The notes under the pieces are model-generated. The model saw only the letters and a list, made by a program, of their open reading frames with translations. It was not told the DNA's origin and did not search any database. Shown here piece by piece: positions 841 to 56,754 of a stretch of DNA of 64,000 nucleotides. The position numbers and the translations under genes were made by a program. Every line of letters starts with the position of its first letter. Positions within the stretch are counted from its first letter, which is position 1. Location of the stretch: IMG/VR virus record IMGVR_UViG_3300035703_000010, positions 140,652 to 204,651 of that record; one strand, given 5' to 3'.

Positions 841-1332
841 ATGAATATAACAGAATCTAAGCTTAGAGAAATAATCAAAGAAGAATACCTCCGTTTAACA
901 CCAGTTTCTGCTGGCGAATTGATGTCTGAACATAGAGCAATGCACCTCGCAGAAGAGTTAATTAATGAAGGACTATGGGACAGCATCAAAGCTTTAGCTG
1001 CTGGAAGTAAAGCAGCTGTAAAAACAGTGGCCGGTGCAGGAGCTGAAGCATTAGGAAGTGCTGCAAATTCAGTTGTTGCTCCGATGATCAAAGCTGGAAC
1101 TGAAGCAGCACAAGCTATTAAGGCAGTAAAAGATGATGCAGTTAAAGCTGCCGCTGCTGCTGCAGCAGAGTCTTTAAAGAAGTCTATTCAGGCAAGTTTA
1201 AAGACATCGATTGCTGATATGATCAAAAAGCTTGTTGCTTCTGGAAAAGATGAAGCGACGGCAAAGAAAGAAGCAGGTCAAGCTATCGGACCAGCGCTAA
1301 GCCAGGCAATTGCATCAGCATTAAATCAATGA
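841..1332 (+). CDS. Ala/Lys-rich putative internal virion protein with the MxITxxxLRxIIxEE leader
   Basis: N-terminus MNITESKLREIIKEEY; paralogous N-terminal region with the next gene. Confidence 0.6.
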   Translation: MNITESKLREIIKEEYLRLTPVSAGELMSEHRAMHLAEELINEGLWDSIKALAAGSKAAVKTVAGAGAEALGSAANSVVAPMIKAGTEAAQAIKAVKDDAVKAAAAAAAESLKKSIQASLKTSIADMIKKLVASGKDEATAKKEAGQAIGPALSQAIASALNQ

Positions 1333-1351
1333 TGAATATTTTAAGGAAAAT

Positions 1352-1927
1352 ATGAAATTAACAAAAGCTTATTTGCAACAAATTATTCGCGAAGAATACG
1401 TAAAAGTTTTGTTTGAATCAAACGGTCAAACGATTTCTGATGAAAAAGCGAGATTGATTGCCGAAAACCTTGAAGAAGGTCTTTTTGGAGATCTTGTTAA
1501 AACTTTTAAAGCAGGAAAAGAAGCTTTCGGTTCTGCGCGTAAAGAATCTTTAGCTTCATCTGCCGCTGCTGCAATGGATTCAATTGCATCAAAACTTGAT
1601 AAGTCCATGAAAGACCTTTTCTCTTCGACAGCTAGAGAGTTACAATCTAAAGCTAATCTTAGCATGGAAGATGCAGCAGAAAAAGCACAATCATTAATGA
1701 CAATTTCTGCATCAAAACTTGTTCCAAGTCTTGAGCCTGTTGCTCAAAAAATGGAAAGAGATATAGAATTAGATTTCACAGATCCAGATACATACGCATG
1801 GCTTCAAACGGGAGAAAGACCTTCTGGCGAGTATCCTGCTGCGAAAAAACAGAAAAAAATGATCGGCCGTCCTGTCCCACGGGTTAGAACAGGGTCTGGC
1901 CAGATGCGTGGCGCTAGCGGATTCTGA
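1352..1927 (+). CDS. Putative internal virion protein, paralog of 841..1332
   Basis: MKLTKAYLQQIIREEY; shares the A..xAExL.xEGLx pattern; SD AAGGA. Confidence 0.6.
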   Translation: MKLTKAYLQQIIREEYVKVLFESNGQTISDEKARLIAENLEEGLFGDLVKTFKAGKEAFGSARKESLASSAAAAMDSIASKLDKSMKDLFSSTARELQSKANLSMEDAAEKAQSLMTISASKLVPSLEPVAQKMERDIELDFTDPDTYAWLQTGERPSGEYPAAKKQKKMIGRPVPRVRTGSGQMRGASGF

Positions 1928-1948
1928 TAGGCATTAGATTAATAGTTT

Positions 1949-1985
1949 AAATCGTGTCATTTATACAAATGACACGATTTTTTTA
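1949..1985 (+). terminator. Intrinsic terminator
   Basis: Perfect 14-bp inverted repeat AAATCGTGTCATTT-ATAC-AAATGACACGATTT followed by a T run. Confidence 0.85.
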
Positions 1986-1996
1986 TTATTATTTAA

Positions 1997-2434
1997 ATGT
2001 CTCCTGACCTTGATAAAGTTCTTTGTGAAAAATACCCAAAGATATTTAAGAACAGAAACGGTTCTATCATGGAAACATGTATGTCATGGGGATTTGAATG
2101 TGAAGATGGATGGTTTGACATCATCGATATTTTATGTCATGAGATTCAGCATCATGTAGATTGGAAATCAAAGGATCTTTCTGAAGAAGAAAGAGAATCA
2201 TTCCAGGTCGTCGCTGATCAAGTAAAAGAAAAGTACGGTACACTTAGGTTTTATTACTACGGTGGAGATGAAGTTATTGAAGGAATGGTATCAATGGCTG
2301 AGTCAATGTCACATAGGACTTGTGAACATTGTGGCTGCCCAGGAGATCATAGGCCTGGCGGGTACATTAAAACCTTGTGCGATTCTTGCGATGACGAATG
2401 GAAAACATCAAGAGGAGTTATTCGGTGCAAATAG
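1997..2434 (+). CDS. Conserved phage hypothetical protein with C-terminal CxxC..CxxC zinc site
   Basis: GWFDII..., QVKEKYGTLRFYY, CEHCG..CDSC. Confidence 0.6.
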   Translation: MSPDLDKVLCEKYPKIFKNRNGSIMETCMSWGFECEDGWFDIIDILCHEIQHHVDWKSKDLSEEERESFQVVADQVKEKYGTLRFYYYGGDEVIEGMVSMAESMSHRTCEHCGCPGDHRPGGYIKTLCDSCDDEWKTSRGVIRCK

Positions 2435-3258
2435 GATGGGCAACTGACATTCACCTAGACATGGCAGGTGATGTTTTAGGAAAAGTAAAAATGTTATCTT
2501 CACAATTAAAAAATTGTGAAGCTTTATTGATAACAGGAGATATATCAGTTTCAGAGATGTTGGTTCCTCATCTTTCTATGCTGGAGACAGTTATAGAAAA
2601 ACCGATATATTTTGTTTTAGGAAATCATGATTATTATGGATCAAATATAGGAATCGTTAGAAGAAAAGTTACGAACATGTGTAATTCTTCTTCATTCCTA
2701 AGATACATGTCCAGCGTTCCTTTTATTAAAATTGACGAAGGGAAATACATTATAGGTCATGATGGGTGGTATGATACGCAAAACGGTAATCCGTACAGTG
2801 ATACATTGTTAATGAATGACTGGATAAGAATTGGAGATTTTAATTCTTCTATTCGAGCTTCCTATGATGGAAGAGCAATAAACAAAAATGTAATCGTTGG
2901 AATATCAAAACAGCTTGCTCAACAATCCGTAAATCATGTTGCTAACGCAATTAAAGCAGTGATAAAAAGCAGCGAGCACATTGTTGTGATGACGCATGTC
3001 CCTCCGTTTAAAGAATCATTTAATGCTTCAGAAAAATATTCTGGTATACCATCGACTGACATTTTACCATGGTACACTTCAAAAGTCATGGGTGATATGT
3101 TGCTGAATGCTGCGAAAACATATCCTCACGTTAAGTTTACAGTATTATCTGGACATGTCCATAGTCATTATGATGATGATTTGCTCAATAACTTAAATGT
3201 GAAAGTTGGAAGAGCAATTTATGGAAATCCGCAGCTAGCAACTTCGATATCTGTTTAA
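2425..3258 (+). CDS. Calcineurin-like metallophosphoesterase
   Basis: Motifs TDIH, TGD, GNHD, H, GHVH; GTG start at 2425 behind SD AGAGGAG (ORF track starts at 2398). Confidence 0.88.
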   Translation: MQIGWATDIHLDMAGDVLGKVKMLSSQLKNCEALLITGDISVSEMLVPHLSMLETVIEKPIYFVLGNHDYYGSNIGIVRRKVTNMCNSSSFLRYMSSVPFIKIDEGKYIIGHDGWYDTQNGNPYSDTLLMNDWIRIGDFNSSIRASYDGRAINKNVIVGISKQLAQQSVNHVANAIKAVIKSSEHIVVMTHVPPFKESFNASEKYSGIPSTDILPWYTSKVMGDMLLNAAKTYPHVKFTVLSGHVHSHYDDDLLNNLNVKVGRAIYGNPQLATSISV

Positions 3259-3274
3259 TTATATAAGGGCGGTT

Positions 3275-3865: not shown

Positions 3866-4918
3866 ATGCGTTTGAAGTTATCTGACTTACAGAAAGTTGT
3901 CAAAGAAACGTTGCAAGAAAAAAAGCAATCTGAAGAATTTTGTAATGAGATAAAAAAAGCTTTTGGTCCTTCTGTAGTTCTAAAAGATGATTTACAATCT
4001 TTAGCAGAAGCAGCAAATGAGCGTTTAGATGTAATCGAATACATGGGAAGAGAGTCAGTTAACTTCTCAAGAAAAGTCGCATTAGCAATGTCTTCTCATG
4101 AATCAGCTGAAGTCAGAAAACTCGCTGCAAGGTTGCTACCTGAAAACGCTTCTACAATCTTATTATTCGATCCGAAACCAAATGTTCGTTTAGCTGCAGC
4201 AAAAAAAGCAAAAGTTGAAGTATTAGAAGAAGCTGTAAAGAAATTTCCGAAAGACGTAGCATTAAAAGATTTATTTGAAGAAAAGAAAAAAGAAAAAGCA
4301 TCTGCAATCGAAGCATCTGCTAGCCATAAAGATGAAGATATGCTTAGCGATGAATGGTATGAAGGAGTAGCAAGAAAATTAATTCAAGATTATGCAAGAA
4401 CCCTAGATACAACATGGCAAGGTTCTGCAGTAAAACAATTTTGTTCTTCAGTTAGAGCAACGACAAGACTCCCAGTAGATCCATCAAAGTTAATGGAAAA
4501 AATGTCAGAACTTCTTAAAAATCATGATGAAGCAAGACAAGAGTATTTAGAAATTAACGAAAGCGTAGAATTTCCAGGTTCTGAGTCTTATGATCCTGTT
4601 GACGACATGATGTGTGAAAATCTCTCTTCACAAAAATTTATCGATCGTTGCAACGAAGTTTTAAACATCAAATATTCTCAACTACCTCCTTCTATAATGA
4701 AATTTAAAATTCAAGAAGGATATACGATTAAAAAAATCCCAGTTTCGTGTACGTTGCCTCACGGCGGAGCTCCCAGACGGATAGATGAAATTGCTTTAGA
4801 TACGTACGTAAAAAGCTGGAATGATAAGCAACGTTTAAATGGTGAACCATTCGAAATTAAGTGGTCTTCTCACCCAGACGCAATAAATAAGATTACATTC
4901 AAGGTGGAATTAAAGTGA
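3866..4918 (+). CDS. Hypothetical protein with leader motif and a HEAT-like helical repeat segment
   Basis: Start moved to ATG 3866 (SD AGGAG); MRLKLSDLQKVVKET; repeats EVRKLAARLL and NVRLAAAKK. Confidence 0.55.
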   Translation: MRLKLSDLQKVVKETLQEKKQSEEFCNEIKKAFGPSVVLKDDLQSLAEAANERLDVIEYMGRESVNFSRKVALAMSSHESAEVRKLAARLLPENASTILLFDPKPNVRLAAAKKAKVEVLEEAVKKFPKDVALKDLFEEKKKEKASAIEASASHKDEDMLSDEWYEGVARKLIQDYARTLDTTWQGSAVKQFCSSVRATTRLPVDPSKLMEKMSELLKNHDEARQEYLEINESVEFPGSESYDPVDDMMCENLSSQKFIDRCNEVLNIKYSQLPPSIMKFKIQEGYTIKKIPVSCTLPHGGAPRRIDEIALDTYVKSWNDKQRLNGEPFEIKWSSHPDAINKITFKVELK

Positions 4919-5732: not shown

Positions 5733-5993
5733 ATGAAAATTACAGCAACTCAACTTCGCAAAATTATCAAAGAAGAAGTAAAAAACGCAACTATCCTTGC
5801 AGAAGCTTCATCTGACTCTTACATGAAAGTTCAAGATACAGAAAATGGAAAGCAATATTCTGTTTTTGTTCAAGAAGGAACGACTCCTTATTCTGTTTCA
5901 ATTTCTTTCGGAAATTCTTTCTCTATTAATCTAAACGTTGAAGATGCACAGGCTCTGTGCGATGCAATCTCTAAAGCGTCAATGGAAATTTGA
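5733..5993 (+). CDS. Small putative internal virion protein with leader motif
   Basis: Start ATG 5733 (SD AAGGA); MKITATQLRKIIKEEV...ILAEA. Confidence 0.55.
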   Translation: MKITATQLRKIIKEEVKNATILAEASSDSYMKVQDTENGKQYSVFVQEGTTPYSVSISFGNSFSINLNVEDAQALCDAISKASMEI

Positions 5994-6016: not shown

Positions 6017-6553
6017 ATGAAAATCACACCAGCAAAACTTCGTCAAATTATCAAAGAAGAACTTTCACGCGCTCTGAAAGAAGATGAATCGTGCCCCAAA
6101 GACACAATGAATGAAGCAATGTCAAGAATTACACCTGACGAAGTTGAAGCTTGGAAGAGCGGAGACTGGGGTTATGTTTCTGGTGATGAACCGCATCATG
6201 TGGATACGGGCAGTGAAGATCCTAACCGCTTCCTACATGGTAAGGATGGTCATGATGATGAAGGTGCAATGGTTAAGTCTCGTCTTCATTCAATGAAAGA
6301 TATGTCTAAAGACATTTGTGATGTCGTTCAACCTGAGGATCAACTTCCTGGTTGGGTTCAAGATCATATCTCTGTGGCTCATGAGAACCTTCAACAAGTT
6401 CATGGTTACCTTATGGGTAAGCAACATTCAATGGAACATGGCGTGATGGAATCAAAGAAGAATCTTACAGAAGCTCATAACAGAGTTACTCGTGAAGAGA
6501 TGGATGCTTGGATGCGTGGCGATTGGGGATTTGTTTCAGAAGAAAATGAATGA
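6017..6553 (+). CDS. Putative internal virion protein with leader motif, internal repeat and a DxEGxM..LPxWVQ domain
   Basis: MKITPAKLRQIIKEEL; two EA..R.T..E..AW..GDWG.VS repeats; domain shared with 56789..57190. Confidence 0.6.
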   Translation: MKITPAKLRQIIKEELSRALKEDESCPKDTMNEAMSRITPDEVEAWKSGDWGYVSGDEPHHVDTGSEDPNRFLHGKDGHDDEGAMVKSRLHSMKDMSKDICDVVQPEDQLPGWVQDHISVAHENLQQVHGYLMGKQHSMEHGVMESKKNLTEAHNRVTREEMDAWMRGDWGFVSEENE

Positions 6554-12354: not shown

Positions 12355-12364
12355 ACATATGGGT

Positions 12365-12400
12365 ATATTTATCTTCCAAGAAAGAGGCTCTTGGAAGATG
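12365..12400 (+). promoter_or_regulatory. Putative late promoter (ATATTTA) plus start-codon-sequestering hairpin of the endonuclease gene
   Basis: ATATTTA 12365-12371; ATCTTCCAAGA (12371-12381) / TCTTGGAAGAT (12389-12399) perfect 11-bp stem covering the AT of ATG 12398. Confidence 0.75.
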
Positions 12401-21916: not shown

Positions 21917-22282
21917 ATGAAGCATAAGCTTACAGAAAATTACATTATCAATATTATGAGAGAAGAATGGCAAAAAAAAATTAATTCTTTAATCTCAGAA
22001 TCAAAGAAAGAAAAGCCGCGTGGTCTTCGCATGCAGGTTGATGTTGACGGCGACGGAAATAAAGAAAACGTTATAGACGTTGGATTACGAGTTCAAAAAA
22101 AGAAGCCTGACGATAAAAGGATCAATGTAAAAAGTGATCCTTCCATGGGTTTAGTATATACGGTTGTTTCAGTAAATGAACGAGATGGTACAATAACGTT
22201 AGGACGTCCAGGATCAGGAGACGGAGATAAAACAATAGTTATAACTAAACAAGCTTTTGAAAGCGAATACGAAAGAAAGTGA
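21917..22282 (+). CDS. Hypothetical protein with leader motif
   Basis: MKHKLTENYIINIMREEW; ATAATTA at 21892-21898; SD GCGGAG. Confidence 0.55.
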   Translation: MKHKLTENYIINIMREEWQKKINSLISESKKEKPRGLRMQVDVDGDGNKENVIDVGLRVQKKKPDDKRINVKSDPSMGLVYTVVSVNERDGTITLGRPGSGDGDKTIVITKQAFESEYERK

Positions 22283-22292: not shown

Positions 22293-23024
22293 ATGAACAT
22301 TAAATCTTTAGGCGTAGATTTAGATAACATCTTAAAAGATGTTGTGAAAAATTCTATTAAAACACAAACAAATCAGTTACCAACTATTGAAAAGTTAGAT
22401 GAAGCTTATGTTGCTGAACCAAAGGTTTTTAAGCAAGTATCAGAATTTTCTACACAAAAAACTAAAGATTCACATGATGCGTTATACAAAGGTTATGTAG
22501 AGTCATTAAACAAAATTTCTGCCGAATTAGATTCAGCCGATCGATCTTCTGCTGATTCAAAGCATTCTCAATATCGTTCTTTAAAGCTTGATGAAGTTTA
22601 TAATTTAAATGCAACATGGCTTCATGAACTATATTTTGCAAATGCATTTGATCCTCATTCTGAAATTACCATGGATTCTTTATCATACATGAGGCTTGAA
22701 CGCGATTTCGGAACTTTTGAAGATTGGCAAAGAGATTTTATGGCATGTGCAATGTCAGCCGGTAGCGGATGGGCAGTTTGCGGATATCACATGTTTCTTC
22801 AACGATACGTTAATACAGTAATAAGCAATCACAGTGATAATGTAATGTTGGGACTTTATCCCATTATCGTTGTAGACATGTGGGAACATGCTTATTATCG
22901 TGATTATCTAAATGACAAAAAGAGTCATTTAGTTGCAAGAATGAGAGAATTTGATTGGGAAGTTATCGAAGAAAGAATTAAAAAAGCAGAACTATTCGCC
23001 CAGACGCTAAAGGTGAACCGATGA
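22293..23024 (+). CDS. Fe/Mn superoxide dismutase
   Basis: Ligand pattern SHDALY.GYV, LHELYF, GSGWAV, DMWEHAYY; extra N-terminal segment; start moved to ATG 22293. Confidence 0.9.
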   Translation: MNIKSLGVDLDNILKDVVKNSIKTQTNQLPTIEKLDEAYVAEPKVFKQVSEFSTQKTKDSHDALYKGYVESLNKISAELDSADRSSADSKHSQYRSLKLDEVYNLNATWLHELYFANAFDPHSEITMDSLSYMRLERDFGTFEDWQRDFMACAMSAGSGWAVCGYHMFLQRYVNTVISNHSDNVMLGLYPIIVVDMWEHAYYRDYLNDKKSHLVARMREFDWEVIEERIKKAELFAQTLKVNR

Positions 23025-23575
23025 CTCGAAAATTAGACGTTTTTAAATTAAAGAAAATAATTCAGGAACAAGTAAAGCTAGTTCTTGAACAAAAAGAAAA
23101 AAAAGAAATTGAAGATTCTTTAGATCAACAAGTTGATGATCTGCTAGCATCCTATGAATCTGAATCAAGATCAAAGAAAAATGAAGGTTTAGATTTTAGA
23201 ATGATGACTCGCAGGTTTTTATCTTCAACAACTCGTACTTTAGTAGAAGCACAAGATGAAGATAAAAAAGAAGAAGAACCTTCAGAAGAAAAGAAAAAAT
23301 TAACAATTGAAGATATTGATGTTGAAGAATTTGCTTCAAACGTGGCAAGAATGATTGAGAATTATGATTCTTTGCTTGAAGTAAGAAATACTCTTGCTAG
23401 AAGAGCTGTCAATTTTTTAATTGAAAACTATGAAGAAGACGTCGTTAATCAATTCAAAGACGTATTAGAAGAAGTACACGATATTGAAATAGGAAAGTCA
23501 AAAGCAGAAATTGAAGATGAGAATTTTCAAGCACCACCAGCTGATCGTGCCGGAGGTGGTGGAGGTGCCGCTTGA
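23021..23575 (+). CDS. Acidic hypothetical protein with leader motif
   Basis: MTRKLDVFKLKKIIQEQV; LVEA site; GGGGG tail. Confidence 0.55.
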   Translation: MTRKLDVFKLKKIIQEQVKLVLEQKEKKEIEDSLDQQVDDLLASYESESRSKKNEGLDFRMMTRRFLSSTTRTLVEAQDEDKKEEEPSEEKKKLTIEDIDVEEFASNVARMIENYDSLLEVRNTLARRAVNFLIENYEEDVVNQFKDVLEEVHDIEIGKSKAEIEDENFQAPPADRAGGGGGAA

Positions 23576-25480: not shown

Positions 25481-26338
25481 ATGCATCATATTTTAATAAC
25501 AGAATCATCTCTACGAGAATTGTTAAAAGAAATAATGGACTCATCTGCTCCTGTTAATGTAAACCCAGTAGTAGATCCACAGGCAGCAGAAACAAATCCT
25601 ACAAATCAAAATTTTTCTCCTGACAATAAAATAGAATTAATGTCTGCATTAAGAATGTTGGTAAATTCTGTAAATGATGAAGATGCTAACGATGTATACG
25701 TCGCAATTAAAGATGCAATAGAAGAAAAGGAAGATGAAATGAAAAAGGCTAACGTTGAAGAAGCAATTCGTATGACAATTAGAAAGATGCTAACTGAAGT
25801 GAACGATGATGATAGTGAAGACGATCTTCCAGGTCTTCCACCAGTAACAAAAATTCCAGCTGGACAACATGGTTCAGAGTTCATGAAAAGATTTGAGAAG
25901 TCAAAAGCAGGATTACAAAAAACGTTTTCATCCATGAGAGATGAAGATTATGAACAACCTAGAGCAGATGAGCCTGCAGCTGGTAGAGGAAGAAAAAACG
26001 TAATGATGACAGACGTTAGCGGTGCATCATTTAAAGATATAGCAAAAGAGATGGGTTTTGCAGCTGAGTCAGGGGCAAAACAAGCTGTAGAGAAAGCATT
26101 ATCAAAAGCAAAATTCGTTATGAAAATGGATTTAATGGATCCAGAACAATTAGAAATTATCGTTCTTCAAAGCATGAAAGATTACATTGATGTATTGAAG
26201 AATACAGGAGAACTTGACACAGCAGAAGTCAAGATATTAAAAGATAACCCAGGAATAGTTCGAGAATTAGATGGATTCAGAGAATTTTTGGATAAAGAAT
26301 TAAGAAAAGTAAGAAAATCCAACGAAGGCGAAGAATGA
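25481..26338 (+). CDS. Hypothetical protein with leader motifs and a C-terminal helix-turn-helix
   Basis: ITESSLRELLKEI; internal EEAIRMTIRKMLTE; ASFKDIAKEMGF..GAKQAVEKAL. Confidence 0.55.
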   Translation: MHHILITESSLRELLKEIMDSSAPVNVNPVVDPQAAETNPTNQNFSPDNKIELMSALRMLVNSVNDEDANDVYVAIKDAIEEKEDEMKKANVEEAIRMTIRKMLTEVNDDDSEDDLPGLPPVTKIPAGQHGSEFMKRFEKSKAGLQKTFSSMRDEDYEQPRADEPAAGRGRKNVMMTDVSGASFKDIAKEMGFAAESGAKQAVEKALSKAKFVMKMDLMDPEQLEIIVLQSMKDYIDVLKNTGELDTAEVKILKDNPGIVRELDGFREFLDKELRKVRKSNEGEE

Positions 26339-27880: not shown

Positions 27881-28060
27881 ATGTCACAAGACAACGACAA
27901 CGAAGATCTTACTTTCACATTTGATAAATTCATGGATGATATCTTGATAAAAGAATCTGCACAAAAGCCAGTTCTTTTAGAAGAAACTCCATCACGCAAG
28001 TACGTAAAGCGTTACATTGAAAAAGCAGCGAATAGAATCAAATACACAAAGGTGACGTGA
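27881..28060 (+). CDS. Small hypothetical protein (59 aa, not in the ORF track)
   Basis: MSQDNDNEDLTFTFDKFMDDILIKES..; strong SD AAAGGAG; stop overlaps the next start. Confidence 0.7.
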   Translation: MSQDNDNEDLTFTFDKFMDDILIKESAQKPVLLEETPSRKYVKRYIEKAANRIKYTKVT

Positions 28061-28554
28061 TGTTGAAACGTGATGTGATTACAACTAAAATAGATTTAAA
28101 AGATTTTTTAAGCGGTGTAATTAAAGAATCTCTTCATTCAACGAAAAAAGTGATCAAAGAAGATGAAGAGAAAGAAGCTTTAAAAACTGGCGATGTGTCC
28201 GTAGAAGAAGTCATTGATAAGCTAAATACAATTAGAGCTGGAAAGTCTTTTAAAAGTGAAGAGATAAAATCTGCGATGGAATCTTATTTAAATGATTTAA
28301 ATTCTGCAGAGAAAACAGCTTTATTTGCATTTCTAAAAGGAATTTCTCAAGTTGTTGGTGGCGAGGTTGAAGGAAGCAAAGCCGTAGAACCTCAAGATTC
28401 ACCAGCAAATGTAAAAATGGAAAAGAAACCGTCTTCACAGAAAGTTACAGTTAAGCCAGTCGTAATTAAGAAACCAGAAGCGCAACCAGGTTCTGGCGCG
28501 AAAGGCAAAGAAGATACGACTCCTCCTGTGCCTATTGCACCCAAGAAAAAGTAA
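28057..28554 (+). CDS. Hypothetical protein with a leader-like motif
   Basis: LKDFLSGVIKES; Pro/Lys-rich tail. Confidence 0.55.
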   Translation: MMLKRDVITTKIDLKDFLSGVIKESLHSTKKVIKEDEEKEALKTGDVSVEEVIDKLNTIRAGKSFKSEEIKSAMESYLNDLNSAEKTALFAFLKGISQVVGGEVEGSKAVEPQDSPANVKMEKKPSSQKVTVKPVVIKKPEAQPGSGAKGKEDTTPPVPIAPKKK

Positions 28555-28791: not shown

Positions 28792-29079
28792 ATGACCACT
28801 CCGATGTTGCAAGAGCTGATAAAACTTATTATCTTACAAGAATCTCGGATTAGAGAAGCTGAAATAACTGGTGATCGCAAGGTTCCATGGGGATCTGAAG
28901 ATCACGTTTCTGACTTAGAGAATCGCTGCGCAAATGTTGAGTATTGGAGAAATAAGTACCCAAGAGGTTCTGCAAAAAGAGATCATTACGGTACAGTTCT
29001 CAAACACCTAAAAAATGAATTAAAATCTGCAAAGAAAGCTGCGCAACATAGACAACTTCACGAAAAAGAAGAGGAATAA
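28792..29079 (+). CDS. Small hypothetical protein with leader motif
   Basis: MLQELIKLIILQES..REAE. Confidence 0.55.
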   Translation: MTTPMLQELIKLIILQESRIREAEITGDRKVPWGSEDHVSDLENRCANVEYWRNKYPRGSAKRDHYGTVLKHLKNELKSAKKAAQHRQLHEKEEE

Positions 29080-30319: not shown

Positions 30320-31300
30320 TCATCCCCAGGTTTCTTTCCCTGATCGTCCTTTAACAGGTACTTTAAACTTTGGTTTGCCTTGCGATATCCTGCTGAATTT
30401 TATTTTGTCTTTATACGGGCTTTTAATCATCATAAATCCTTCAGGGGTGACTAAAATGATGCCTGTTAAATCAAATACATCTTCTGCTAAAATAGTTTTT
30501 TCCCATTGAGACTTTAAAATATCTGGATTTGAAAAAACAGGACTGTTTAGTATTGATAGAGCTGCAGCTATGCTTGAAACGTCGCCTAGTTTACTTGAAG
30601 CTTCATCTTCATCGATGCCTAACAATCTAAGTATTTTCAACATGTTCGTTGGAGCAACTTTATATGTTTTATCGTTTATTTTGACATTCATCACTTTGCT
30701 TTCTGCAATTTTGATTATGCTTGAAGCGGCCATAATGATTTTCATAATGTCATTGAAACGTGCAGCAGTTATCTCTCCGCTTTGTAACAAATCATAATTG
30801 CTTTTACCTGATTTTGTGACGGCGTCTTTCATAAAAGACACAATTTGATTGTATTCTGATGACATTCCGTTACTTTTTACAATTTCTTCAATGCCTGGAA
30901 AATCTATGAATTCTTGTAATTCATCAAACGCTATTCTTAGAGTCTTATTTATAGCACCTACAGCTAGATTTCCTTCCGTACCAGGTCTAATTTCGCTGTC
31001 TTTATCAGGGGCTTTTACTTCCCATTTTCCGCTGAATGGACCATCTGGGATGTCTAAATCATATGATTCTGATTGACCTTGTACTTTTCCGCCTAAAATA
31101 TCAGCTAGGCGATTTTCACCTGGTCCAACGCCTGTTTCTCCACTCAGCGGAACATCACTAGGAAAATCAACCCATTTATTTAATTCATCAAATTTAGGAG
31201 CATTATTAGGAGACTGTTCAGTTAATTTTTTTTCGAAGATCATCTTAGACAGCTCTTCATTTATTATGCTTCGTAATTCTTTAATACGCATCTTCATCAT
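30320..31300 (-). CDS. Leader-bearing protein with a possible PD-(D/E)XK nuclease core
   Basis: MKMRIKELRSIINEE; G.GE..L..YDL..WEVK. Confidence 0.5.
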   Translation of the reverse strand: MMKMRIKELRSIINEELSKMIFEKKLTEQSPNNAPKFDELNKWVDFPSDVPLSGETGVGPGENRLADILGGKVQGQSESYDLDIPDGPFSGKWEVKAPDKDSEIRPGTEGNLAVGAINKTLRIAFDELQEFIDFPGIEEIVKSNGMSSEYNQIVSFMKDAVTKSGKSNYDLLQSGEITAARFNDIMKIIMAASSIIKIAESKVMNVKINDKTYKVAPTNMLKILRLLGIDEDEASSKLGDVSSIAAALSILNSPVFSNPDILKSQWEKTILAEDVFDLTGIILVTPEGFMMIKSPYKDKIKFSRISQGKPKFKVPVKGRSGKETWG

Positions 31301-35333: not shown

Positions 35334-35987
35334 TTAACTTTTTATTAGGACTTGACGAACATATTTGCGGATCAATGATTCACCAATAATGTCATTCTTT
35401 AATATATCGAATATTTCATTGCCATGTTTTTGAATTGACTTTGGCAAAAAAGAAATGAATAGTTCTTTATTGTCATTTTCTTCTTCGACATCATCTTCGT
35501 CGTCAAATTCATTTTCATCTTCTTCAGCTGCATCTTCTAAGAAATCTCTCATTTGAGTTCCACTGATGTCAATCGTTTCTTGCCTGCTGATGCCTCTTGG
35601 AATAATCTGGCCATTCTTTAATAAATTTGGTGCAGATTCAATTAAGCTTTTTTCATTATAATTTCTGATGATGTCTTCATCATCAGAATAAATTGTGTAC
35701 ACATCTGTTGATGCTTCAGATTCAGCACGTTCTAATTCATTATAAACTTTTGCGACAGGAGAAGTACGATCATAATCTGGCGTTACGTTACTAGGTAACG
35801 TATCTTGAATATACGTTAACCAAATGTACAGCATCGTATCTCCACTTATTCCTATGTCATCTTCTCTTCTATCTGCAGTAGAAACATATAATTTAACTTG
35901 ATCATTTTCTTTTGCTGCAATTCTAACGAGCATATCATGACCAGCATGGTATGGTTTTGCAGCCATTGGAACTAAACCTATTTTCAT
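35334..35987 (-). CDS. Cytidylyltransferase-like (HxGH) nucleotidyltransferase
   Basis: KPYHAGH, ISGTQMR (KMSKS-equivalent); C-terminal ESLIRKYVRQVL. Confidence 0.8.
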   Translation of the reverse strand: MKIGLVPMAAKPYHAGHDMLVRIAAKENDQVKLYVSTADRREDDIGISGDTMLYIWLTYIQDTLPSNVTPDYDRTSPVAKVYNELERAESEASTDVYTIYSDDEDIIRNYNEKSLIESAPNLLKNGQIIPRGISRQETIDISGTQMRDFLEDAAEEDENEFDDEDDVEEENDNKELFISFLPKSIQKHGNEIFDILKNDIIGESLIRKYVRQVLIKS

Positions 35988-36676: not shown

Positions 36677-37609
36677 ATGAATGTCCAAGAAAAAATTATA
36701 AGAGAGTTTATAAGAGAATCTTTGCTTTCTAATGAAATTATTGTTGAAAGCTCTTTTACTTCTGGCGTGAAATCTGCTGTTTCAGATTTGGGGAAAGTCG
36801 TTGCTGGATCTGCTGCAACTATATTAGCTTCAGTGAAACAATTAACAGGTTTAACGTATCAAGCTATAAAAGAAGTAGGTTCGTTGGGGATATTTAAAGC
36901 TGACTACGATAAAGTAAAAAGTCAATATCACCAAAACTTGGCAGAGATACAAAAAGAATATGGAGCTGAAATTGATGCAGCTGAAAAAACTTTTTCAAAA
37001 GCCTTGTTCCCTTTAACTTCTGCAGCAAAAATAGGATTAGGAGCAACAGCTACAGCATTTTTCTTTGCAAACCCATTAGCGTTTATTGCCTTAGAAGGCA
37101 CGGCTACTGGAACATCTAAAAAAATAAAAGGTGAAGTTGTGCCAAAGATTAAAGATCTAAAATCTCAGGCACAAAAAGCCATTGATAAGTGGTCTGGTTA
37201 TGAAGAACAAAGTGAAACTAAAAATAAAGGTAATGACCTTTTAAGACAAGATTGGGTAAGAGAAGGACAACAAAAGTTTAAACAATCTACAGAGTTGTAT
37301 TTTAAACAAATAAATGATAAGATTAAAAAAATTTCATCTGCTGCAGATGTTAAAAGTCTTGGAATTCCTGATAAGATAGTTCAGCAGCTTTCGAAAGATT
37401 CAAAAAATCAAGCGGAAATATTAAAAGCTTGTAAAGCTTTAGCATTGAATGAAATTCTTAATACTGTAAAAGTCGACAAAGAAAAACAAATAGCTGATGC
37501 AAAAAAAGCTAACGTTCCTGAGTCTGCAATAACTGGATCTAAAAGTTTCATTAAATTATACGATAAGATCATAGTGACAATTAACGAAAAAATTTCATCA
37601 TTAAAATGA
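36677..37609 (+). CDS. Helical hypothetical protein with leader motif
   Basis: MNVQEKIIREFIRESLL; ATACTTA at 36661-36667. Confidence 0.55.
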   Translation: MNVQEKIIREFIRESLLSNEIIVESSFTSGVKSAVSDLGKVVAGSAATILASVKQLTGLTYQAIKEVGSLGIFKADYDKVKSQYHQNLAEIQKEYGAEIDAAEKTFSKALFPLTSAAKIGLGATATAFFFANPLAFIALEGTATGTSKKIKGEVVPKIKDLKSQAQKAIDKWSGYEEQSETKNKGNDLLRQDWVREGQQKFKQSTELYFKQINDKIKKISSAADVKSLGIPDKIVQQLSKDSKNQAEILKACKALALNEILNTVKVDKEKQIADAKKANVPESAITGSKSFIKLYDKIIVTINEKISSLK

Positions 37610-39660: not shown

Positions 39661-40404
39661 TTATTTATCAAGAAATTTTCTTGTTACGCTAGGAAAATTT
39701 TTCTCAGCATATAAAATCCATGAATTTCTAATGTCTTCAATTGTTTTGTCAATCATTTGTTGATCATTTATCCCATGATTGATGAATGATCTTTCAATTT
39801 TTTGTAACATTTCATCTATGATCTCATAAAATGATTTTTTTTGTTTCTTTGACTGTTGTCTTGCTCCGGCAACAAATGCTGGTATTTCAGAAGGATCAGT
39901 ATAGTATTTTTTCTTTTTTTCTATGTCTTTTTTATCTTGCATCATTTCATATCCTGTCTGTATCGAAGAAACAGCTAATTCAGGACCTTGAGATGAATGT
40001 TCTAATTCATGTCTGATAGCGTTGTGTAGGTAAGGCTGAATCATTCTTAGATGAATAGGCATGAGCATTCCAGTAGTTGATTGAACCGTGATTGAAATGT
40101 TCAATTCATTTAATTGCCAGTCCCATGATGCTTCTGCTAAAGCTTTATCGTTCTTAGTATGAAGAACTTTAACGATCATACTTAATGAAATTTTTTCAGA
40201 AGTCTGTGGTGCAATATCATTGCTTATTTCTATAAGAAATTTTGCAATTCTAACAATGAAATTTCCTTCTTTCATTCTTGGAAGATCATTGATTTTTTCA
40301 ATAGAAGAAGCAAGTTTCTTCATTGCAATTCTACTGATCTTGCTAGCAAGAGAATCAAGCTTCGACTCTAAAAGTAAACGTCTAATTATCGACTCATAAA
40401 TCAT
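39661..40404 (-). CDS. HExxH-containing hypothetical protein with a leader-like start
   Basis: MIYESIIRRLLLES; IRHELEH; YY..PSEIPAF; start moved to ATG 40404. Confidence 0.55.
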   Translation of the reverse strand: MIYESIIRRLLLESKLDSLASKISRIAMKKLASSIEKINDLPRMKEGNFIVRIAKFLIEISNDIAPQTSEKISLSMIVKVLHTKNDKALAEASWDWQLNELNISITVQSTTGMLMPIHLRMIQPYLHNAIRHELEHSSQGPELAVSSIQTGYEMMQDKKDIEKKKKYYTDPSEIPAFVAGARQQSKKQKKSFYEIIDEMLQKIERSFINHGINDQQMIDKTIEDIRNSWILYAEKNFPSVTRKFLDK

Positions 40405-40467: not shown

Positions 40468-41157
40468 ATGAGCAAAACATTACTTTCAAGAATTTCTGCA
40501 TCTATGTTGAAAGACGGATTGTCTCCAACATTAGAGATGATATCATACGCATTAGTTTGTGATGAATACGCAGCAGGAGTTGCCGATGAAGATCAATTAC
40601 AGTTTGCTATGTGCAATTATCTCGATCAATCAGCAAGAAGATCAAGATCGCTTTCAGAAGTAATCAATAGAGTTAAAGAACCTCCTATTTCAGAGATTTT
40701 TACTGAATGCACGATCATGATGGTTGATGCGGTTATCAGATCACCAAAATTTATTCATAGATCACTTCACGTTTCATCAGAAAATAATATCAAAATAGGG
40801 GATGGGAAATACATCAAACCAGATGTAGCAATTTGGAATGACGATAAGATAATTGGAGTGATTGAATGTAAGACTAGTTTAGGAAGAGCTAGGAAAGAAT
40901 GGAAAAATGATTTTGAACAAAGAGTTGAGATTTTTAAAGGAGTTGGCATTAAGCCTGACTCGGTGTTCTTTGTAGTTGCAACAGAAAATTCTTGGCAAGG
41001 TTTTCCAGCAGATGATCCAAATACATTAAATTCGTGGTTTTCCTTATGCCCTAAAGGAACTTGGTTCGGAGGAGGAAAGCAAGGTGAACTTAAACTTTCA
41101 GATAAAATGAATCAAGGATGCTTGAAAAAATTAATTCAAAAATTAGAAAATCTATGA
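40468..41157 (+). CDS. Restriction-endonuclease-like PD-(D/E)XK nuclease
   Basis: IKPDVAIW..IGVIECKTSLG. Confidence 0.65.
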   Translation: MSKTLLSRISASMLKDGLSPTLEMISYALVCDEYAAGVADEDQLQFAMCNYLDQSARRSRSLSEVINRVKEPPISEIFTECTIMMVDAVIRSPKFIHRSLHVSSENNIKIGDGKYIKPDVAIWNDDKIIGVIECKTSLGRARKEWKNDFEQRVEIFKGVGIKPDSVFFVVATENSWQGFPADDPNTLNSWFSLCPKGTWFGGGKQGELKLSDKMNQGCLKKLIQKLENL

Positions 41158-41523
41158 TTTTTTGTCTTCAAACGTATCACGTTCATCTGGTCTTTTAGAC
41201 AATTTTTTATCTGATTCTTGTTCTTTTCTTTCTTCGTCTTGAAACTTATCTTGAGCTCTCTGTAGCTTTGAAGACATATTGATATAATCGTACATTCTTC
41301 TTATGCTGATTCCAAGGGTTTTTGCAGCTTCTCTTGCATTACCATCAGAAGCTGCAAGAGCTTTCATTGCATCAGCAATTGCATCTGATCTTTCTATTTT
41401 ATATTCTGCGCCGAATTTAGTTAGACCACCACCTGGCTTATCATCTTCATTTAATAAAGATTCTTTTACAAATTCTCTAATGAGAACCTTTAAATTTGAT
41501 AGTGTTCTTTTATTGCTCATCAT
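41152..41523 (-). CDS. Fis-type helix-turn-helix protein with leader motif
   Basis: LKVLIREFVKESLLNE; ALAASDGNAREAAKTLGISIRRMY. Confidence 0.7.
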   Translation of the reverse strand: MMSNKRTLSNLKVLIREFVKESLLNEDDKPGGGLTKFGAEYKIERSDAIADAMKALAASDGNAREAAKTLGISIRRMYDYINMSSKLQRAQDKFQDEERKEQESDKKLSKRPDERDTFEDKKS

Positions 41524-50793: not shown

Positions 50794-51108
50794 TTATCTT
50801 CTATGGTCTGCTTTGGGCGTGACATGCCAATTTGTTGTATAGGGATCTATAAAGACCCCTGGTTCTTCTGCAGTCGGAGGAACTGGACCATAGCAATCTT
50901 CCATGTCGGCTTCTGGTTCCATTAAGTGAGCAGATATTTCATCTTCTTCTTTTTTTCTTTTTTTTCCTAAATAAGGAATTTCATCTCTTTGAGCAAGATG
51001 AGTTGACATTACGTTTGATACATGGGGACCATCTATATTACTAGCATATGCTTCTTTTAAGAAGCATCTTATGTAATGTCGTAAGACTGATTCACTTAAT
51101 TTTTTCAT
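50794..51108 (-). CDS. Small hypothetical protein with leader motif
   Basis: MKKLSESVLRHYIRCFLKEA. Confidence 0.55.
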   Translation of the reverse strand: MKKLSESVLRHYIRCFLKEAYASNIDGPHVSNVMSTHLAQRDEIPYLGKKRKKEEDEISAHLMEPEADMEDCYGPVPPTAEEPGVFIDPYTTNWHVTPKADHRR

Positions 51109-51254: not shown

Positions 51255-51473
51255 TTACCTTCTTCTCATGATCCGTCCACGCGTCGTATCATATGGAGAA
51301 ACTTCAATAATAACCTCATCACCAGGAAGTACCATAATGTGGTTTTGCCTCATTTTACCTGATAATGTTGCTAAAACAGTCTGTCCTGTTGTCGTTTTTA
51401 CTTCAAATAATGTTCCTGGTAACGATTCGACGACGTGCCCAATCAATTCCATTCTATCTTCACGATCATTCAT
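51255..51473 (-). CDS. infA: Translation initiation factor IF-1
   Basis: G.VVESLPGTLF.V..LATLSGKMR.N.I.VLPGD.V..EVSPYD.TRGRI..R; 72 aa from ATG 51473. Confidence 0.95.
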   Translation of the reverse strand: MNDREDRMELIGHVVESLPGTLFEVKTTTGQTVLATLSGKMRQNHIMVLPGDEVIIEVSPYDTTRGRIMRRR

Positions 51474-51699
51474 GTCCTGATAACGACCACTCTTTTTCAT
51501 ATTTTGTTTCTTCATTCTCCTTATCAATATCATTTTCATCACCAGAATCTGATCCTAGACCTGGTGGAACACCGTAGTTTATTCCCTTGCTGGGTTTATT
51601 AAGTTTTGCACCATCAGCTGAGATACCAGCAGACCATCTAAGGTTTCTCTCAACTTCTTCCCTTATCATCTTTCTCAGATTTGACATTCTTATTTTCAT
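51466..51699 (-). CDS. Small protein with leader motif
   Basis: MKIRMSNLRKMIREEV. Confidence 0.6.
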   Translation of the reverse strand: MKIRMSNLRKMIREEVERNLRWSAGISADGAKLNKPSKGINYGVPPGLGSDSGDENDIDKENEETKYEKEWSLSGHE

Positions 51700-53869: not shown

Positions 53870-53911
53870 ATAATGTGATAATAGTAAGGTCTTTATCAAT
53901 CTTGTACACGG

Positions 53912-54296: not shown

Positions 54297-54316
54297 TTAC
54301 ACTAAATAAAAAATAT

Positions 54317-55210
54317 TTATTTTTTATCATATTTTCGTGACATTTTATATGCTTTTTCCTTTGGAATGCCACCAGAAACATATACTCTCATCTTATAATC
54401 AGCAGAATCTACATCACCATCTTTATCGATATCTAATTCATCATTATGCTTACTGTCTGATAATTCTTTTTCTTCTTCAACAATTTCTTTGATCATCTTT
54501 CTAAGATCACTAATGCTTATTGATTCTAAAAACTTTGGAGTTTGTTTCGAATACATGGGAACTTGAAGTTCAGGAGCAATCTCAGTTTGTTTTCCATATC
54601 CTGCAATATATTTTGAAGGCTGTTCAATTTCTTGTTGATATAACCCGTTTATAGTATCACGAATAAACTTTTTTAATTTTAACTCGTGTCCACCGCTCGT
54701 GCCTTCACCACGTCCAGGATCGACTGACATATGCCATTGAACAACTTTTTCTTCGATGTATCTTCTGAACTCAGGATCTAATTTTAATGGTGAATCTTTT
54801 TTAAGATTGTCATCACGAACAAGCATGTTTTCGAGAGTATCATACAATAAGTCATCGTCATATCCACCGGGGATTGAAAAAACATGCTTTTCTAATTCAT
54901 CTTTTGACAAAAAAAACTTTGCATCTTTTTTTGTTGGAGCAGCAAGAAATGCAGCTTCTTTACCTTCGGGGCTCATTAAAGTTGTAATAGCTTCTCTAAT
55001 TAACTGGCGTAATTCTGATAAACGAATTTGCATGGTTGAATTTCTTTCTACACTTTCTGCTTCTATTGCCGCGATTTGCCCTCTAGCTTTTTTGCGAGAC
55101 GTATGACAAGCTCTGTGCTTTTTCCCCTTTTTATCAGTATAAGATAGAACGTGGGTTCCTCTTTTTCCTGAAGACTGCTTACATTTCTGTTTTCTTATCT
55201 TATAAGGCAT
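54317..55210 (-). CDS. Multi-module hypothetical protein with two internal leader motifs and an EF-hand-like loop
   Basis: Basic N-domain; MQIRLSELRQLIREA (55033); ISISDLRKMIKEI; DIDKDGDVDSAD. Confidence 0.6.
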   Translation of the reverse strand: MPYKIRKQKCKQSSGKRGTHVLSYTDKKGKKHRACHTSRKKARGQIAAIEAESVERNSTMQIRLSELRQLIREAITTLMSPEGKEAAFLAAPTKKDAKFFLSKDELEKHVFSIPGGYDDDLLYDTLENMLVRDDNLKKDSPLKLDPEFRRYIEEKVVQWHMSVDPGRGEGTSGGHELKLKKFIRDTINGLYQQEIEQPSKYIAGYGKQTEIAPELQVPMYSKQTPKFLESISISDLRKMIKEIVEEEKELSDSKHNDELDIDKDGDVDSADYKMRVYVSGGIPKEKAYKMSRKYDKK

Positions 55211-55217
55211 AGGGTAA

Positions 55218-55433
55218 TTATTTCTTGCTAGTCGATAGACCCATATCTTTTGCCCACTTTTTTATTTTCTTTTTTATATCGTCTGGAACGTAAACGCTTC
55301 CAGCATTAAAAGCAGAATCATCTAATAGTTCTTCATCATATTGTTCTTCAGGATGTGAACCACCCCTAGATTTATGCGCAGTTACAAACTCTCTTATTAA
55401 TTTTCTTAACATAAGCTCTTCTTTTAAATTCAT
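55218..55433 (-). CDS. Small protein with leader motif
   Basis: MNLKEELMLRKLIREFV; SVYVPDDIK..I.KW..DMGL. Confidence 0.6.
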   Translation of the reverse strand: MNLKEELMLRKLIREFVTAHKSRGGSHPEEQYDEELLDDSAFNAGSVYVPDDIKKKIKKWAKDMGLSTSKK

Positions 55434-55462
55434 GTGGATACTTATGTTTGAGGTGCGGACAA

Positions 55463-55780
55463 ATGAAAAAACATCGCATCATTATAGGGTTTTTGATTCT
55501 TAGCACTGGAATGTCTTGCGCAGAAGAAACAGCAATGGATGAAAACCCTGCATCTTCTTCATCAGGAATGGAGGGGTATGGTCCATATCCGAATGTTATC
55601 AATTATGATAAACACGAAGATGAAAAACAAGAACCTTGGGTATGTGGATATGAATTGATTGAATCAATTGGGCCACAGGGAGAAATATTTTTAATAGAAG
55701 TTCAGGTTCCGTGCGATCCTTCGGCTGACGTATACAAGGGATGTCCACAACCCGACATAAAAAACAAGAAAGCCCCGTAA
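55463..55780 (+). CDS. Putative lipoprotein
   Basis: MKKHRIIIGFLILSTGMS-C; SD GAGGTG. Confidence 0.55.
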   Translation: MKKHRIIIGFLILSTGMSCAEETAMDENPASSSSGMEGYGPYPNVINYDKHEDEKQEPWVCGYELIESIGPQGEIFLIEVQVPCDPSADVYKGCPQPDIKNKKAP

Positions 55781-55795
55781 CTACGGGGCTTTCTT
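55766..55795. terminator. Bidirectional terminator between convergent genes
   Basis: AAGAAAGCCCCGTA-AC-TACGGGGCTTTCTT 14-bp inverted repeat. Confidence 0.85.
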
Positions 55796-55815
55796 TACTG
55801 ATTATAAAGATCTAA

Positions 55816-56118
55816 TCAAGTCCCGCCAGCACCACCGGCACCAGGAGATCCGCCAGTTCCTGGAGCGCCTCCAGCTCCAACACTGCTAGAAGCTGAAGAA
55901 CTATCTACGCTAGACATTCCGCCTGTACCTTGTTGACCTCCAGAAGAAGCTGTAGAACCTCCTTGACCAGACTCAGAAGTCCCACCAGCTCCTCCTTGAC
56001 CAGATGCTGAGGAAGCGACGACTGATGAAGGTGAAGACTCATCTGTATCGCACTTTTTCTCTTCGCACCCAACAACTAGAGAAGCCAAACAAATAAAAGC
56101 AAAAGTATTCTTAAACAT
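55816..56118 (-). CDS. Lipoprotein with a Gly/Ser-rich low-complexity tail
   Basis: MFKNTFAFICLASLVVG-C then SSASGQGGAGGT.. repeats; SD AAAGGA. Confidence 0.7.
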   Translation of the reverse strand: MFKNTFAFICLASLVVGCEEKKCDTDESSPSSVVASSASGQGGAGGTSESGQGGSTASSGGQQGTGGMSSVDSSSASSSVGAGGAPGTGGSPGAGGAGGT

Positions 56119-56193
56119 TTTATATCCTTTCATCTCACAAGAGATGAAAACATTATACAACACTATAAAACGATTTTTTACTTAATTAAAGCT

Positions 56194-56754
56194 TTATTTT
56201 CCTTTAAGAATTTTAGAAACTGGTTTTCTAGACCACATTCTGCAACTCCAGTAAGCTGCTTTTGTTCTATTAGAAGCTCTTGGTGTACCACACCCATGCC
56301 TTGCTCGGAAAGATTTTCTGGCTTTTGGATTATCTCTACGAATTTCCATGTTTGGATCACCAAACTCTACCTTTTTAACGTTTCCTGTCTTAGGATCTTT
56401 GACGTATACTTTGTATTTTTTTACGTCACCTTTCATAGGTTTTCCTAACTTGACTTCTCTTCCTTTGTATTTTGCTTCAACGATACATTCTCTTACTGAT
56501 TCATAATCAAGTTCAAATTGTTCAAAAACGTTCAAGTTTTGTAACATGATTCCTTCAGCAACGATTTGTTCTACTACTTCTTCAGGAAGATCTTCTTCTT
56601 CTATTCCATCTGGAAACCCCGCATAATAAAGCTGGTCAAGCTCGTCTGGTTCTAATGGTTCTCCAGTGGATGGTTCGTATCGACCAGGAGGATAGTTAAT
56701 TTGAGACAAAGACTCTCTAATTAATTGCTTTAAATTTGTGATTGATATCTTCAT
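56194..56754 (-). CDS. Leader-bearing protein with a basic C-terminal domain
   Basis: MKISITNLKQLIRES; IVEA-KYKGREV..SFRARH.C..AAYWSCRMW. Confidence 0.65.
   Translation of the reverse strand: MKISITNLKQLIRESLSQINYPPGRYEPSTGEPLEPDELDQLYYAGFPDGIEEEDLPEEVVEQIVAEGIMLQNLNVFEQFELDYESVRECIVEAKYKGREVKLGKPMKGDVKKYKVYVKDPKTGNVKKVEFGDPNMEIRRDNPKARKSFRARHGCGTPRASNRTKAAYWSCRMWSRKPVSKILKGK

Follow-up and report, generated by a model that had tools for sequence, protein, structure and literature searches.

A near-invariant N-terminal leader on unrelated proteins of uncultured T4-like phages resembles the T4 capsid targeting sequence

Bacteriophage T4 packages tagged proteins that act as a pre-made first strike on the host, including the anti-restriction protein IPI* and the RNA-polymerase modifier Alt, and the fast evolution of such proteins makes them difficult to identify in other phages. 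The tag, the capsid targeting sequence (CTS), is carried by the internal proteins (IPs) IPI, IPII and IPIII and by Alt and gp24 (Mullaney & Black 1996, as reviewed in PMC9026906, PMC5694885 and PMC3012670). In the CTS of IPIII residues 4 and 7 serve targeting and residues 8 and 10 serve processing (PMC9026906), T4 propeptides are trimmed at multiple sites (PMC5694885), and Alt and gp21 also have C-terminal propeptides (PMC9026906). The hypervariable IP loci of T-even phages encode a diverse set of defence-countering proteins that share only the CTS (PMC3012670, PMC9026906). The phages phiKZ, 201phi2-1 and SPN3US have a gp21-family protease and many head-internal proteins that are processed after Glu, and their propeptides are regarded as prohead-targeting signals (PMC5694885). 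Here we describe a short leader at the N-termini of unrelated proteins encoded in a 64,000-nucleotide stretch of viral DNA, hereafter the window, which is the final 64 kb (contig positions 140,652-204,651) of the 204,651-bp IMG/VR contig IMGVR_UViG_3300035703_000010. The leader is carried by about 19% of the window genes, about one in five. In our judgement it is probably a lineage-specific targeting propeptide of the T4 type that would be cut after Glu14 and, in many cases, a second time 7-8 residues further on.

The leader was compared with the T4 CTS using a logo of 327 leaders, which reads M-K-[IL]-T-[KR]-x-Q-L-R-x-I-I-[KR]-E-E-[LIV]; in 89% of them the spacing from the starting Met to the conserved Leu is exactly 7 residues. 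Counted from the cleaved Glu, residues 4, 7, 8 and 10 of the T4 CTS become P7, P4, P3 and P1, and at these positions the 327 leaders have Leu in 84%, Ile in 73%, Ile in 86% and Glu in 98%, respectively. The T4 N-termini (NC_000866; a slash marks the cut here and below) are MKTYQEFIAE/A in IPII and IPIII, MAKINELLRE/S in gp24, MELITELFDE/D in Alt and MLKEQLIAE/A in gp22. A matrix covering P7 to P1' was built from environmental leaders only and ranked against 158 T4 open reading frames (ORFs). Gp24 ranked first, gp2 second and gp22 third, followed by IPIII and IPII at sixth and seventh and Alt at twelfth. The DNA-end protector gp2 (NC_000866 76061-76885, L338) is a head-internal protein and was seen to have a CTS-like N-terminus, MAIFQIINE/ST.

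Like the T4 CTS, the leader would be a short propeptide at the extreme N-terminus that is common to unrelated proteins, with hydrophobic residues at P7, P4 and P3 and (L/I)-x-E with Glu at P1. Its genes are likewise dispersed or beside the gp21 protease, in a lineage with a T4-type protease, scaffold and gp23 head. Unlike the T4 CTS, the leader has 14 residues rather than 10 with an extra M-K-I-T start, is basic and not acidic at P5 and P6, is almost invariant over hundreds of cargos and many lineages, frequently has a second site 7-8 residues on, and occurs on about 16-19% of genes in the sampled regions as compared to fewer than ten proteins in T4. The carriers are also different, being uncultured 'Far-T4'-like aquatic phages with a DnaE-type polymerase. 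The closest parallel is with the T-even IP loci, where small, unrelated, fast-evolving ORFs in tandem share only an N-terminal tag, although the leader arrays are larger in scale (up to 15 of 24 consecutive genes), use another consensus and belong to another phage lineage. The sequence and context features that were checked agree with those of the T4 CTS class, with the protease, scaffold and gp23 found in relatives, suggesting that the leader belongs to it. The proposed mechanism would be that of the known T4 CTS, and what appears new is the distinct near-invariant 14-residue consensus, the tandem second site and the scale.

To place the leader within the window the pattern [LIVM][RKQ].[LIVMF][LIVM][RKQN]E was tested on the 95 called genes. 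There were 16 matches, in 15 genes, within the first 25 residues against 2 in 18,168 later positions (Fisher odds ratio about 60, p = 1.2e-13), and both later matches fall in a single ORF, 54317-55210 (-). The leader had been noticed in a sequence-only reading of the window, and every gene start claimed there translates to the N-terminus that was given. A hidden Markov model trained on the same sites and scanned in six frames, a test that is circular for discovery and informative on position, returned the claimed sites as its top 14 matches and gave no strong matches in non-coding frames. The internal copy that had been reported at 55033 is real and is joined by a second near 54505. The reported C-terminal variant in 35334-35987 is also real, ending in LIRKYVRQVLIKS before the stop codon, and the orthologue in a syntenic relative (L006) keeps ..LLRTYIDTILG at the same end. 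Scored with a position-specific scoring matrix, canonical or near-canonical leaders (17-24 bits) begin at 841, 1352, 5733, 6017, 23021, 31300, 36677, 51699, 55433 and 56754, and degenerate or displaced ones (7-15 bits) at 3866, 21917, 25481, 28057, 28792, 40404, 41523 and 51108. P1 is between E13 and E17 in most leader genes of the window, and three further leaders lie upstream of it on the same contig. An AlphaFold2 model of the 5733-5993 protein made from the single sequence has a helix at residues 5-15, at low confidence (mean pLDDT 62).

The proteins behind the leader had been described as unrelated, and BLAST past residue 28 agreed, with no similarity among them; a paralogous family was ruled out on this ground. 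Among 152 distinct leaders six codons occur at Leu8 and six at Arg9, which indicates that conservation acts on the protein and not on the DNA, and the free variation of synonymous codons ruled out a signal at the DNA or mRNA level. In the L006 orthologues the leader pattern is kept while the letters drift. These observations also bear on the proposal that the shared N-terminus is functionless and arose as a side effect when new genes formed by duplication or recombination at one 5' cassette, made up of promoter, ribosome binding site and first codons. Tandem arrays of small ORFs (L125, L139 and L282) and an upstream element shared by some leader genes are what such a cassette would leave behind. 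However, a copied cassette does not account for fixed amino acids under freely varying synonymous codons, for a pattern retained in L006 orthologues as the sequence drifts, or for a motif that persists over contigs of 21-58% GC. Codon variation, retention in L006 and persistence across the GC range together point to purifying selection on the peptide, and we consider a functionless cassette very improbable.

A T4-like tag cut after Glu by a gp21-type protease had been proposed for the window, with the downstream domains often beginning after an (L/I/V/T/S)-x-E-A/G/S site. The general proposal agreed with the T4 positions, with the peptidase S77 head-module context described below and with the restriction of the leader to viruses, but the details of the cut site had to be corrected. 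The motif [LI]xE[AGS] is indeed enriched just after the leader, 2.5-fold over shuffles (z = 9.3) and only in the following 40 residues, but the primary cut is most likely inside the leader itself, at I-[KR]-E14/E. A second [LI]-x-E site forms a sharp peak 7-8 residues after the first and is present in 32% of leaders. The propeptide as proposed would have 14 residues, lengthened to about 21-22 where the second site is used, and trimming at this second site would fit the multi-site propeptide trimming described for T4 (PMC5694885). The capsid proteins of leader-bearing phages keep a T4-type L-x-E propeptide site, as in ..QVLKE/SSS and ..QLLDE/ATQ.

Two other kinds of targeting peptide were compared with the leader. 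The propeptides of phiKZ, 201phi2-1 and SPN3US are mostly longer than 100 residues, lack a shared portable sequence and have cut sites of the form (S/A/G)-x-E, whereas the leader is uniform and 14-22 residues long. After the leader [AGS]-x-E was not enriched (z = -2.9 to 1.4), and the short tag together with this lack of enrichment ruled out a phiKZ-like long propeptide. The cargo-loading peptides of encapsulins resemble the leader by analogy only, as short portable peptides that steer unrelated cargo into a protein shell. They are usually C-terminal, bind the shell directly, are not cleaved and belong to bacterial nanocompartments and not to virions. An encapsulin-type peptide was ruled out by the N-terminal position of the leader, its invariant Glu at the cleavage position and its context of T4-type virion modules.

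The genomic neighbourhood of the leader was assessed in loci fetched from IMG/VR. A gp21-like protease was encoded in 25 of the 120 listed loci fetched by the leader pattern alone, where we estimate an expectation of about 5% for 9-kb samples of 150-250 kb genomes. In 30 loci with a gp21-type (S77) protease the leader genes adjoin the protease or sit between it and the scaffold-like and gp23 genes, and T4 keeps its prohead-core genes 67 and 68 (gp67/gp68) at those positions. These 30 loci include close relatives of the window's genome. The same arrangement was present in five loci that were fetched via an unrelated structural gene (L319, L321, L322, L334 and L335), with the leader on 2 of the 4 genes that separate protease from scaffold; the leader frequency over all loci fetched that way was 4%. 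L335, a 187-kb relative with 59-91% identity to this contig in several structural proteins, shows this 2-of-4 pattern, its protease matches T4 gp21 (PDB 5JBL, E = 1e-15; phrog_207) and its capsid protein is Gp23. Peptidase_S77 and Gp23 are also encoded in L070.

This context helps to weigh the proposal that the leader is only a recognition signal for a protease, either the prohead protease or another such as the phage ClpP (32505-33068), and marks a pro-peptide or degron that would govern how proteins are activated or turned over inside the infected cell and not packaged. The [LI]-x-E motif fits gp21 specificity, the window itself encodes a ClpP, another ClpP outside the window carries the leader, and many leader genes are found among non-structural genes. 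On the other hand, T4 gp21 works inside the prohead core and the propeptides that it cuts are the targeting ones (PMC9026906, PMC5694885), the conserved hydrophobic residues at P7 and P4 are T4 targeting and not processing positions, and the leader genes beside protease and scaffold hold the positions of prohead-core genes. We regard a protease signal without packaging as unlikely. An equally unlikely explanation in our view is a general helix at the N-terminus for docking or oligomerisation, which would bring the proteins to some other conserved partner of phage or host, such as the phage GroEL, the membrane or a factory for replication or transcription, and whose likeness to the T4 CTS would be coincidental. 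The heptad-like hydrophobic pattern (L8, I11/I12, 16, 19/20) runs past the proposed cut, the leader is uniform over contigs of widely different GC as it would be for a single conserved partner, and GroEL recurs in leader-bearing genomes. A docking helix leaves unexplained the fixed distance from Met1, the near-universal Glu at P1, the enrichment and position of the second [LI]xE, the T4 head proteins at the top of the matrix ranking and the leader genes between protease and scaffold.

Assuming that the leader is a T4-type targeting propeptide, a 14-residue peptide M-K-[IL]-T-[KR]-x-Q-L-R-x-I-I-[KR]-E / E-[LIV] at the N-terminus of unrelated proteins would dock each cargo onto the scaffolding core of the assembling prohead, possibly by helix-helix contacts with a CTS-like N-terminus of the scaffold. 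The gp21-type (peptidase S77) prohead protease would then cut after Glu14, with Ile at P3 and Glu at P1; roughly one leader in three would be cut a second time, at [LI]-x-E 7-8 residues downstream. The mature cargo would be kept in the head alongside the DNA until infection and then enter the host; ejection with the DNA is suggested by analogy with the T4 IPs and Alt (PMC9026906).

To determine how widely the leader is spread, IMG/VR was scanned with a DNA pattern for M-K-x5-L-R-x-I-I-x-E-E. At least 162 matches to this strict pattern were found in at least 120 stretches, and all of the matches listed were at ORF starts. The positions left free in the DNA pattern were also conserved among the matches listed. 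In 1.07 Mb of the listed stretches 285 of 1,773 ORFs (16%) had the leader, with the densest case being 15 of 24 consecutive genes in an 11-kb stretch (L139), and the GC content of the listed leader-bearing contigs ranged from 21 to 58%. Prokaryotic genomes totalling 596 Gb, scanned with this DNA pattern, yielded only 29 stretches. Some 13 of the matches there look fortuitous and the others are canonical leaders on contigs of metagenome-assembled genomes, many of them clustered on few contigs; no isolate genome in that scan had a canonical leader. The leader is restricted to viral sequence. A search of the ESM Atlas with residues 1-24 returned only unnamed clusters as the nearest, and no description of the leader consensus was found in the searchable literature, including searches with motif strings, for the CTS together with marine phages and in the Far-T4 paper.

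Several observations weigh against reading the leader as a T4-type targeting propeptide. Packaging, cleavage, the binding partner and injection are all inferred. The contig was read upstream as far as position 88,978, which takes in the genes of tail, sheath and neck; its own head module would lie before that position, and its S77 protease is accordingly taken from relatives. No canonical leader was found in cultured phages when the leader proteins and a 25-residue leader were searched by tblastn against 50,697 records, a weak negative because the low-complexity filter of BLAST may hide matches, and the head modules of the cultured relatives immuto and Mel-JY01 had only degenerate leader-like N-termini. 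The leader had been called amphipathic, which the helical hydrophobic moment did not show: that of the consensus was no higher than that of shuffles (0.40 vs 0.30 +/- 0.15), a difference that was not significant. Most leader genes of the window lie among replication, nucleotide-metabolism and auxiliary genes and not among structural ones, although T4 ipI-III and alt are also dispersed among non-structural genes. The cargo load, about 19% of the window genes and up to 15 of 24 genes in L139, is far above the handful in T4. Conservation runs two residues past the proposed cut (E15 and hydrophobic 16) and the leader is far more uniform than the T4 CTSs, and either feature could reflect a function other than, or besides, that of a cleaved propeptide.

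The first leader gene of the window, 841..1332 (+), encodes a 163-residue protein with an Ala-rich cargo that begins MNITESKLREIIKE/EY (23.7 bits, P1 = E14), with ATAATTAC 31 nt upstream and a leader-bearing orthologue in L048. It is followed at 1352..1927 (+) by a 191-residue protein beginning MKLTKAYLQQIIRE/EYVKVLFE/S (21.8 bits), in which a second L-F-E/S site falls at +8. A degenerate leader (11.8 bits) starts the 350-residue protein of 3866..4918 (+) as MRLKLSDLQKVVKE/TL. At 5733..5993 (+) an 86-residue protein begins MKITATQLRKIIKE/EV..ILAE/A (23.8 bits), and at 6017..6553 (+) a 178-residue protein begins MKITPAKLRQIIKE/ELSRALKE/D (24.4 bits). The next, at 21917..22282 (+), encodes 121 residues with a degenerate leader, MKHKLTENYIINIMRE/EW (9.1 bits), and again has ATAATTAC upstream, at a distance of 25 nt.

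The leaders that follow can mostly be read beside their L006 orthologues. The 184-residue protein of 23021..23575 (+) begins MTRKLDVFKLKKIIQE/QV (17.2 bits) and its orthologue MNKLSKSYLRRLIVEEL, and the 285-residue protein of 25481..26338 (+) begins MHHILITESSLRELLKE/IM (15.3 bits) and its orthologue MESISKKNLRLIIDDLL. A longer N-terminal extension precedes the leader in the 165-residue protein of 28057..28554 (+), which reads ..DLKDFLSGVIKE/SL with P1 = E24 (8.9 bits) and corresponds to ..KDLDRLIRE/AT in L006. The weakest member, at 6.6 bits, is the 95-residue protein of 28792..29079 (+), whose N-terminus MTTPMLQELIKLIILQES is only weakly leader-like and whose orthologue begins MKNLSKAHLRSMILREM. 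On the other strand, 30320..31300 (-) encodes a 326-residue protein beginning MMKMRIKELRSIINE/EL (20.0 bits) with an orthologue that is 56% identical and begins MSNLLETYIKTLIEG. The nucleotidyltransferase-like protein of 35334..35987 (-) is the one with the C-terminal leader-like helix, ..GESLIRKYVRQVLIKS up to the stop codon; this helix is kept in the L006 orthologue and has no Glu at the position expected for cleavage. A leader-like helix was also seen at the C-terminus encoded by L282 9790-9960 (..LRLFIRETLQEIFKS before the stop codon), again with no Glu at the expected cleavage position.

The remaining leader genes lie in the second half of the window. The 310-residue protein of 36677..37609 (+) has a hydrophobic Gly/Ala-rich segment, begins MNVQEKIIREFIRE/SL (16.8 bits) and has ATACTTAT 16 nt upstream of its gene. 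A degenerate leader, MIYESIIRRLLLE/SK (13.7 bits), begins the 247-residue protein of 39661..40404 (-), which contains HELEH and found no relative in a PDB sequence search. In the 123-residue protein of 41152..41523 (-) the motif is in tandem, ..LSNLKVLIREFVKE/SL (12.6 bits), with a weak match to a Fis-type helix-turn-helix (HTH). Two short proteins follow, one of 104 residues beginning MKKLSESVLRHYIRCFLKE/AY at 50794..51108 (-) (12.7 bits) and one of 77 residues beginning MKIRMSNLRKMIRE/EV at 51466..51699 (-) (22.3 bits), which has an orthologue in L101. The 297-residue ORF of 54317..55210 (-) has a basic N-terminal domain and two internal leader copies, QIRLSELRQLIRE/AI from M60 and ..SDLRKMIKE/IV near residue 243. 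Three leader-type genes may have fused to give this ORF, or it may encode a polyprotein that is cut at the internal sites. Next to it 55218..55433 (-) encodes 71 residues beginning MNLKEELMLRKLIRE/FV (18.0 bits) with a weak ribbon-helix-helix (RHH) match. The last leader gene, 56194..56754 (-), encodes 186 residues beginning MKISITNLKQLIRE/SL (18.7 bits), in which the leader is followed by an acidic linker and then by ..CIVE/AKYKG.. and a phrog_7595 domain in the C-terminal half.

Many leader genes had also been described as carrying an upstream ATANNTA element. The placement of the element before starts proved to be non-random, as 10 of the 12 copies of ATAMTTAY in the window lie about 10-50 nt upstream of a start codon. 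However, 12 copies is the number expected by chance and only 5-6 of these 10 starts belong to leader genes. The element, (G)ATAATTAC or ATACTTATC, is found at window positions 810, 21892, 25462, 36661, 41535, 50126 and 55221, and the same type of element occurs at contig positions 98820 and 105356 (L289/L160). Its presence before structural genes for both fibre and sheath and before several leader genes hints that these genes share a programme of transcription, possibly a late one, and it is possibly a late promoter of this lineage.

The cargos are mostly orphans. Pfam and PHROGs searches with all 20 leader proteins of the window gave no confident family except phrog_7595 in 56194-56754, with weak hints only of HTH, RHH and nucleotidyltransferase, and PDB sequence searches with two window cargos gave no relatives. 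The phrog_7595 homologue of the Kyanoviridae phage C48C1 begins with a canonical T4-type CTS, MKKFKQYIDE/G, and keeps L-T-E/A ahead of the domain; an [LI]-x-E-A at this place is conserved in three lineages. In the listed IMG/VR stretches the 285 leader ORFs comprise 238 non-redundant cargos, and a Pfam domain was found in only about 5 of the 60 longest; one leader-bearing protein outside the window is a ClpP. Leader genes occur in tandem arrays of small ORFs, with 7 in L125, 15 of 24 in L139 and 4 in L282. A different shared N-terminal motif (MKKLLTEWRKFLKE or MKQLLTEWRKFV) was seen in four tandem genes at 5723-7963 of L024, a 190-kb contig that also has MKIT leaders, and is possibly a second class of tag.

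Judged by its capsid protein the lineage is T4-like and of the 'Far-T4' kind. By this protein the nearest cultured relatives are Flavobacterium phage immuto (47%), Rhodothermus phage RM378 and Microcystis phage Mel-JY01, and the window has no near relative among the 50,697 cultured phage records. When longer copies of the genome were sought by exact matches to its proteins, the matches were all in Logan contigs no longer than 7.7 kb. The window encodes isocitrate lyase, nucleotide-metabolism enzymes, a 950-residue fibre protein and a DnaE-type polymerase split at an intein. Upstream of it the contig has RNR, helicase and RecA-like genes and, still further upstream, baseplate, tape-measure and tube genes, three sheath paralogues and neck genes. 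The three tail-sheath-like paralogues (1016, 1016 and 945 residues) lie in a row with similar N-termini (L160 3422-9580 and L159 103-2940, contig about 102.3-111.7 kb). Downstream of the fibre protein lie, in tandem, three paralogues with collagen repeats (507, 502 and 488 residues; 45132-49645 (+)), which are probably fibres as well. At the polymerase locus, 9661-14555 (+), the N-terminal part (9661-12354) ends with an intein N-splicing region, a free-standing 320-residue ORF with a Cys-rich N-terminus follows at 12341-13303, and the C-terminal part (13272-14555) starts with an intein C-splicing region, so that the locus looks like a 'fractured' gene with a split intein.

Other genes of the window were of interest in their own right. 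A complete operon of YeaH(DUF444)-like, SpoVR-like and PrkA kinase genes lies at 57432-61874 (+), with homologues of 56-67% identity in L023, another leader-bearing contig. Chaperone and protease genes encode GroEL (52259-53899 (-)), found again in other leader-bearing contigs, ClpP (32505-33068 (-)) and an HSP20-family small heat-shock protein (382-744 (+)). Auxiliary metabolic genes encode isocitrate lyase (34019-35269 (-)), an FGE-sulfatase-domain protein (31368-32246 (-)) and a carbon-nitrogen hydrolase (26343-27101 (+)).

A broader reading, which we put forward tentatively and with a little less than even confidence, is that in Far-T4-like aquatic phages a near-invariant tag loads tens of fast-evolving proteins per genome, 10-20% of the genes, for co-injection with the DNA. 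In this large arsenal the cargo beyond the orphans would include ClpP, an L,D-transpeptidase, P-loop kinases and DNA-binding proteins. The leader also offers a defined peptide for testing the loading of foreign proteins into capsids. As a searchable viral tag it would let orphan ORFs from aquatic viromes, by the hundred, be treated as candidate injected effectors, which could include anti-defence or host-takeover proteins. If this is true, the core-loading mechanism of T4 operates at a much larger scale in these phages than in T4 itself, the injected effector repertoire of uncultured phages would be readable from sequence, and the tag would be a ready packaging handle.

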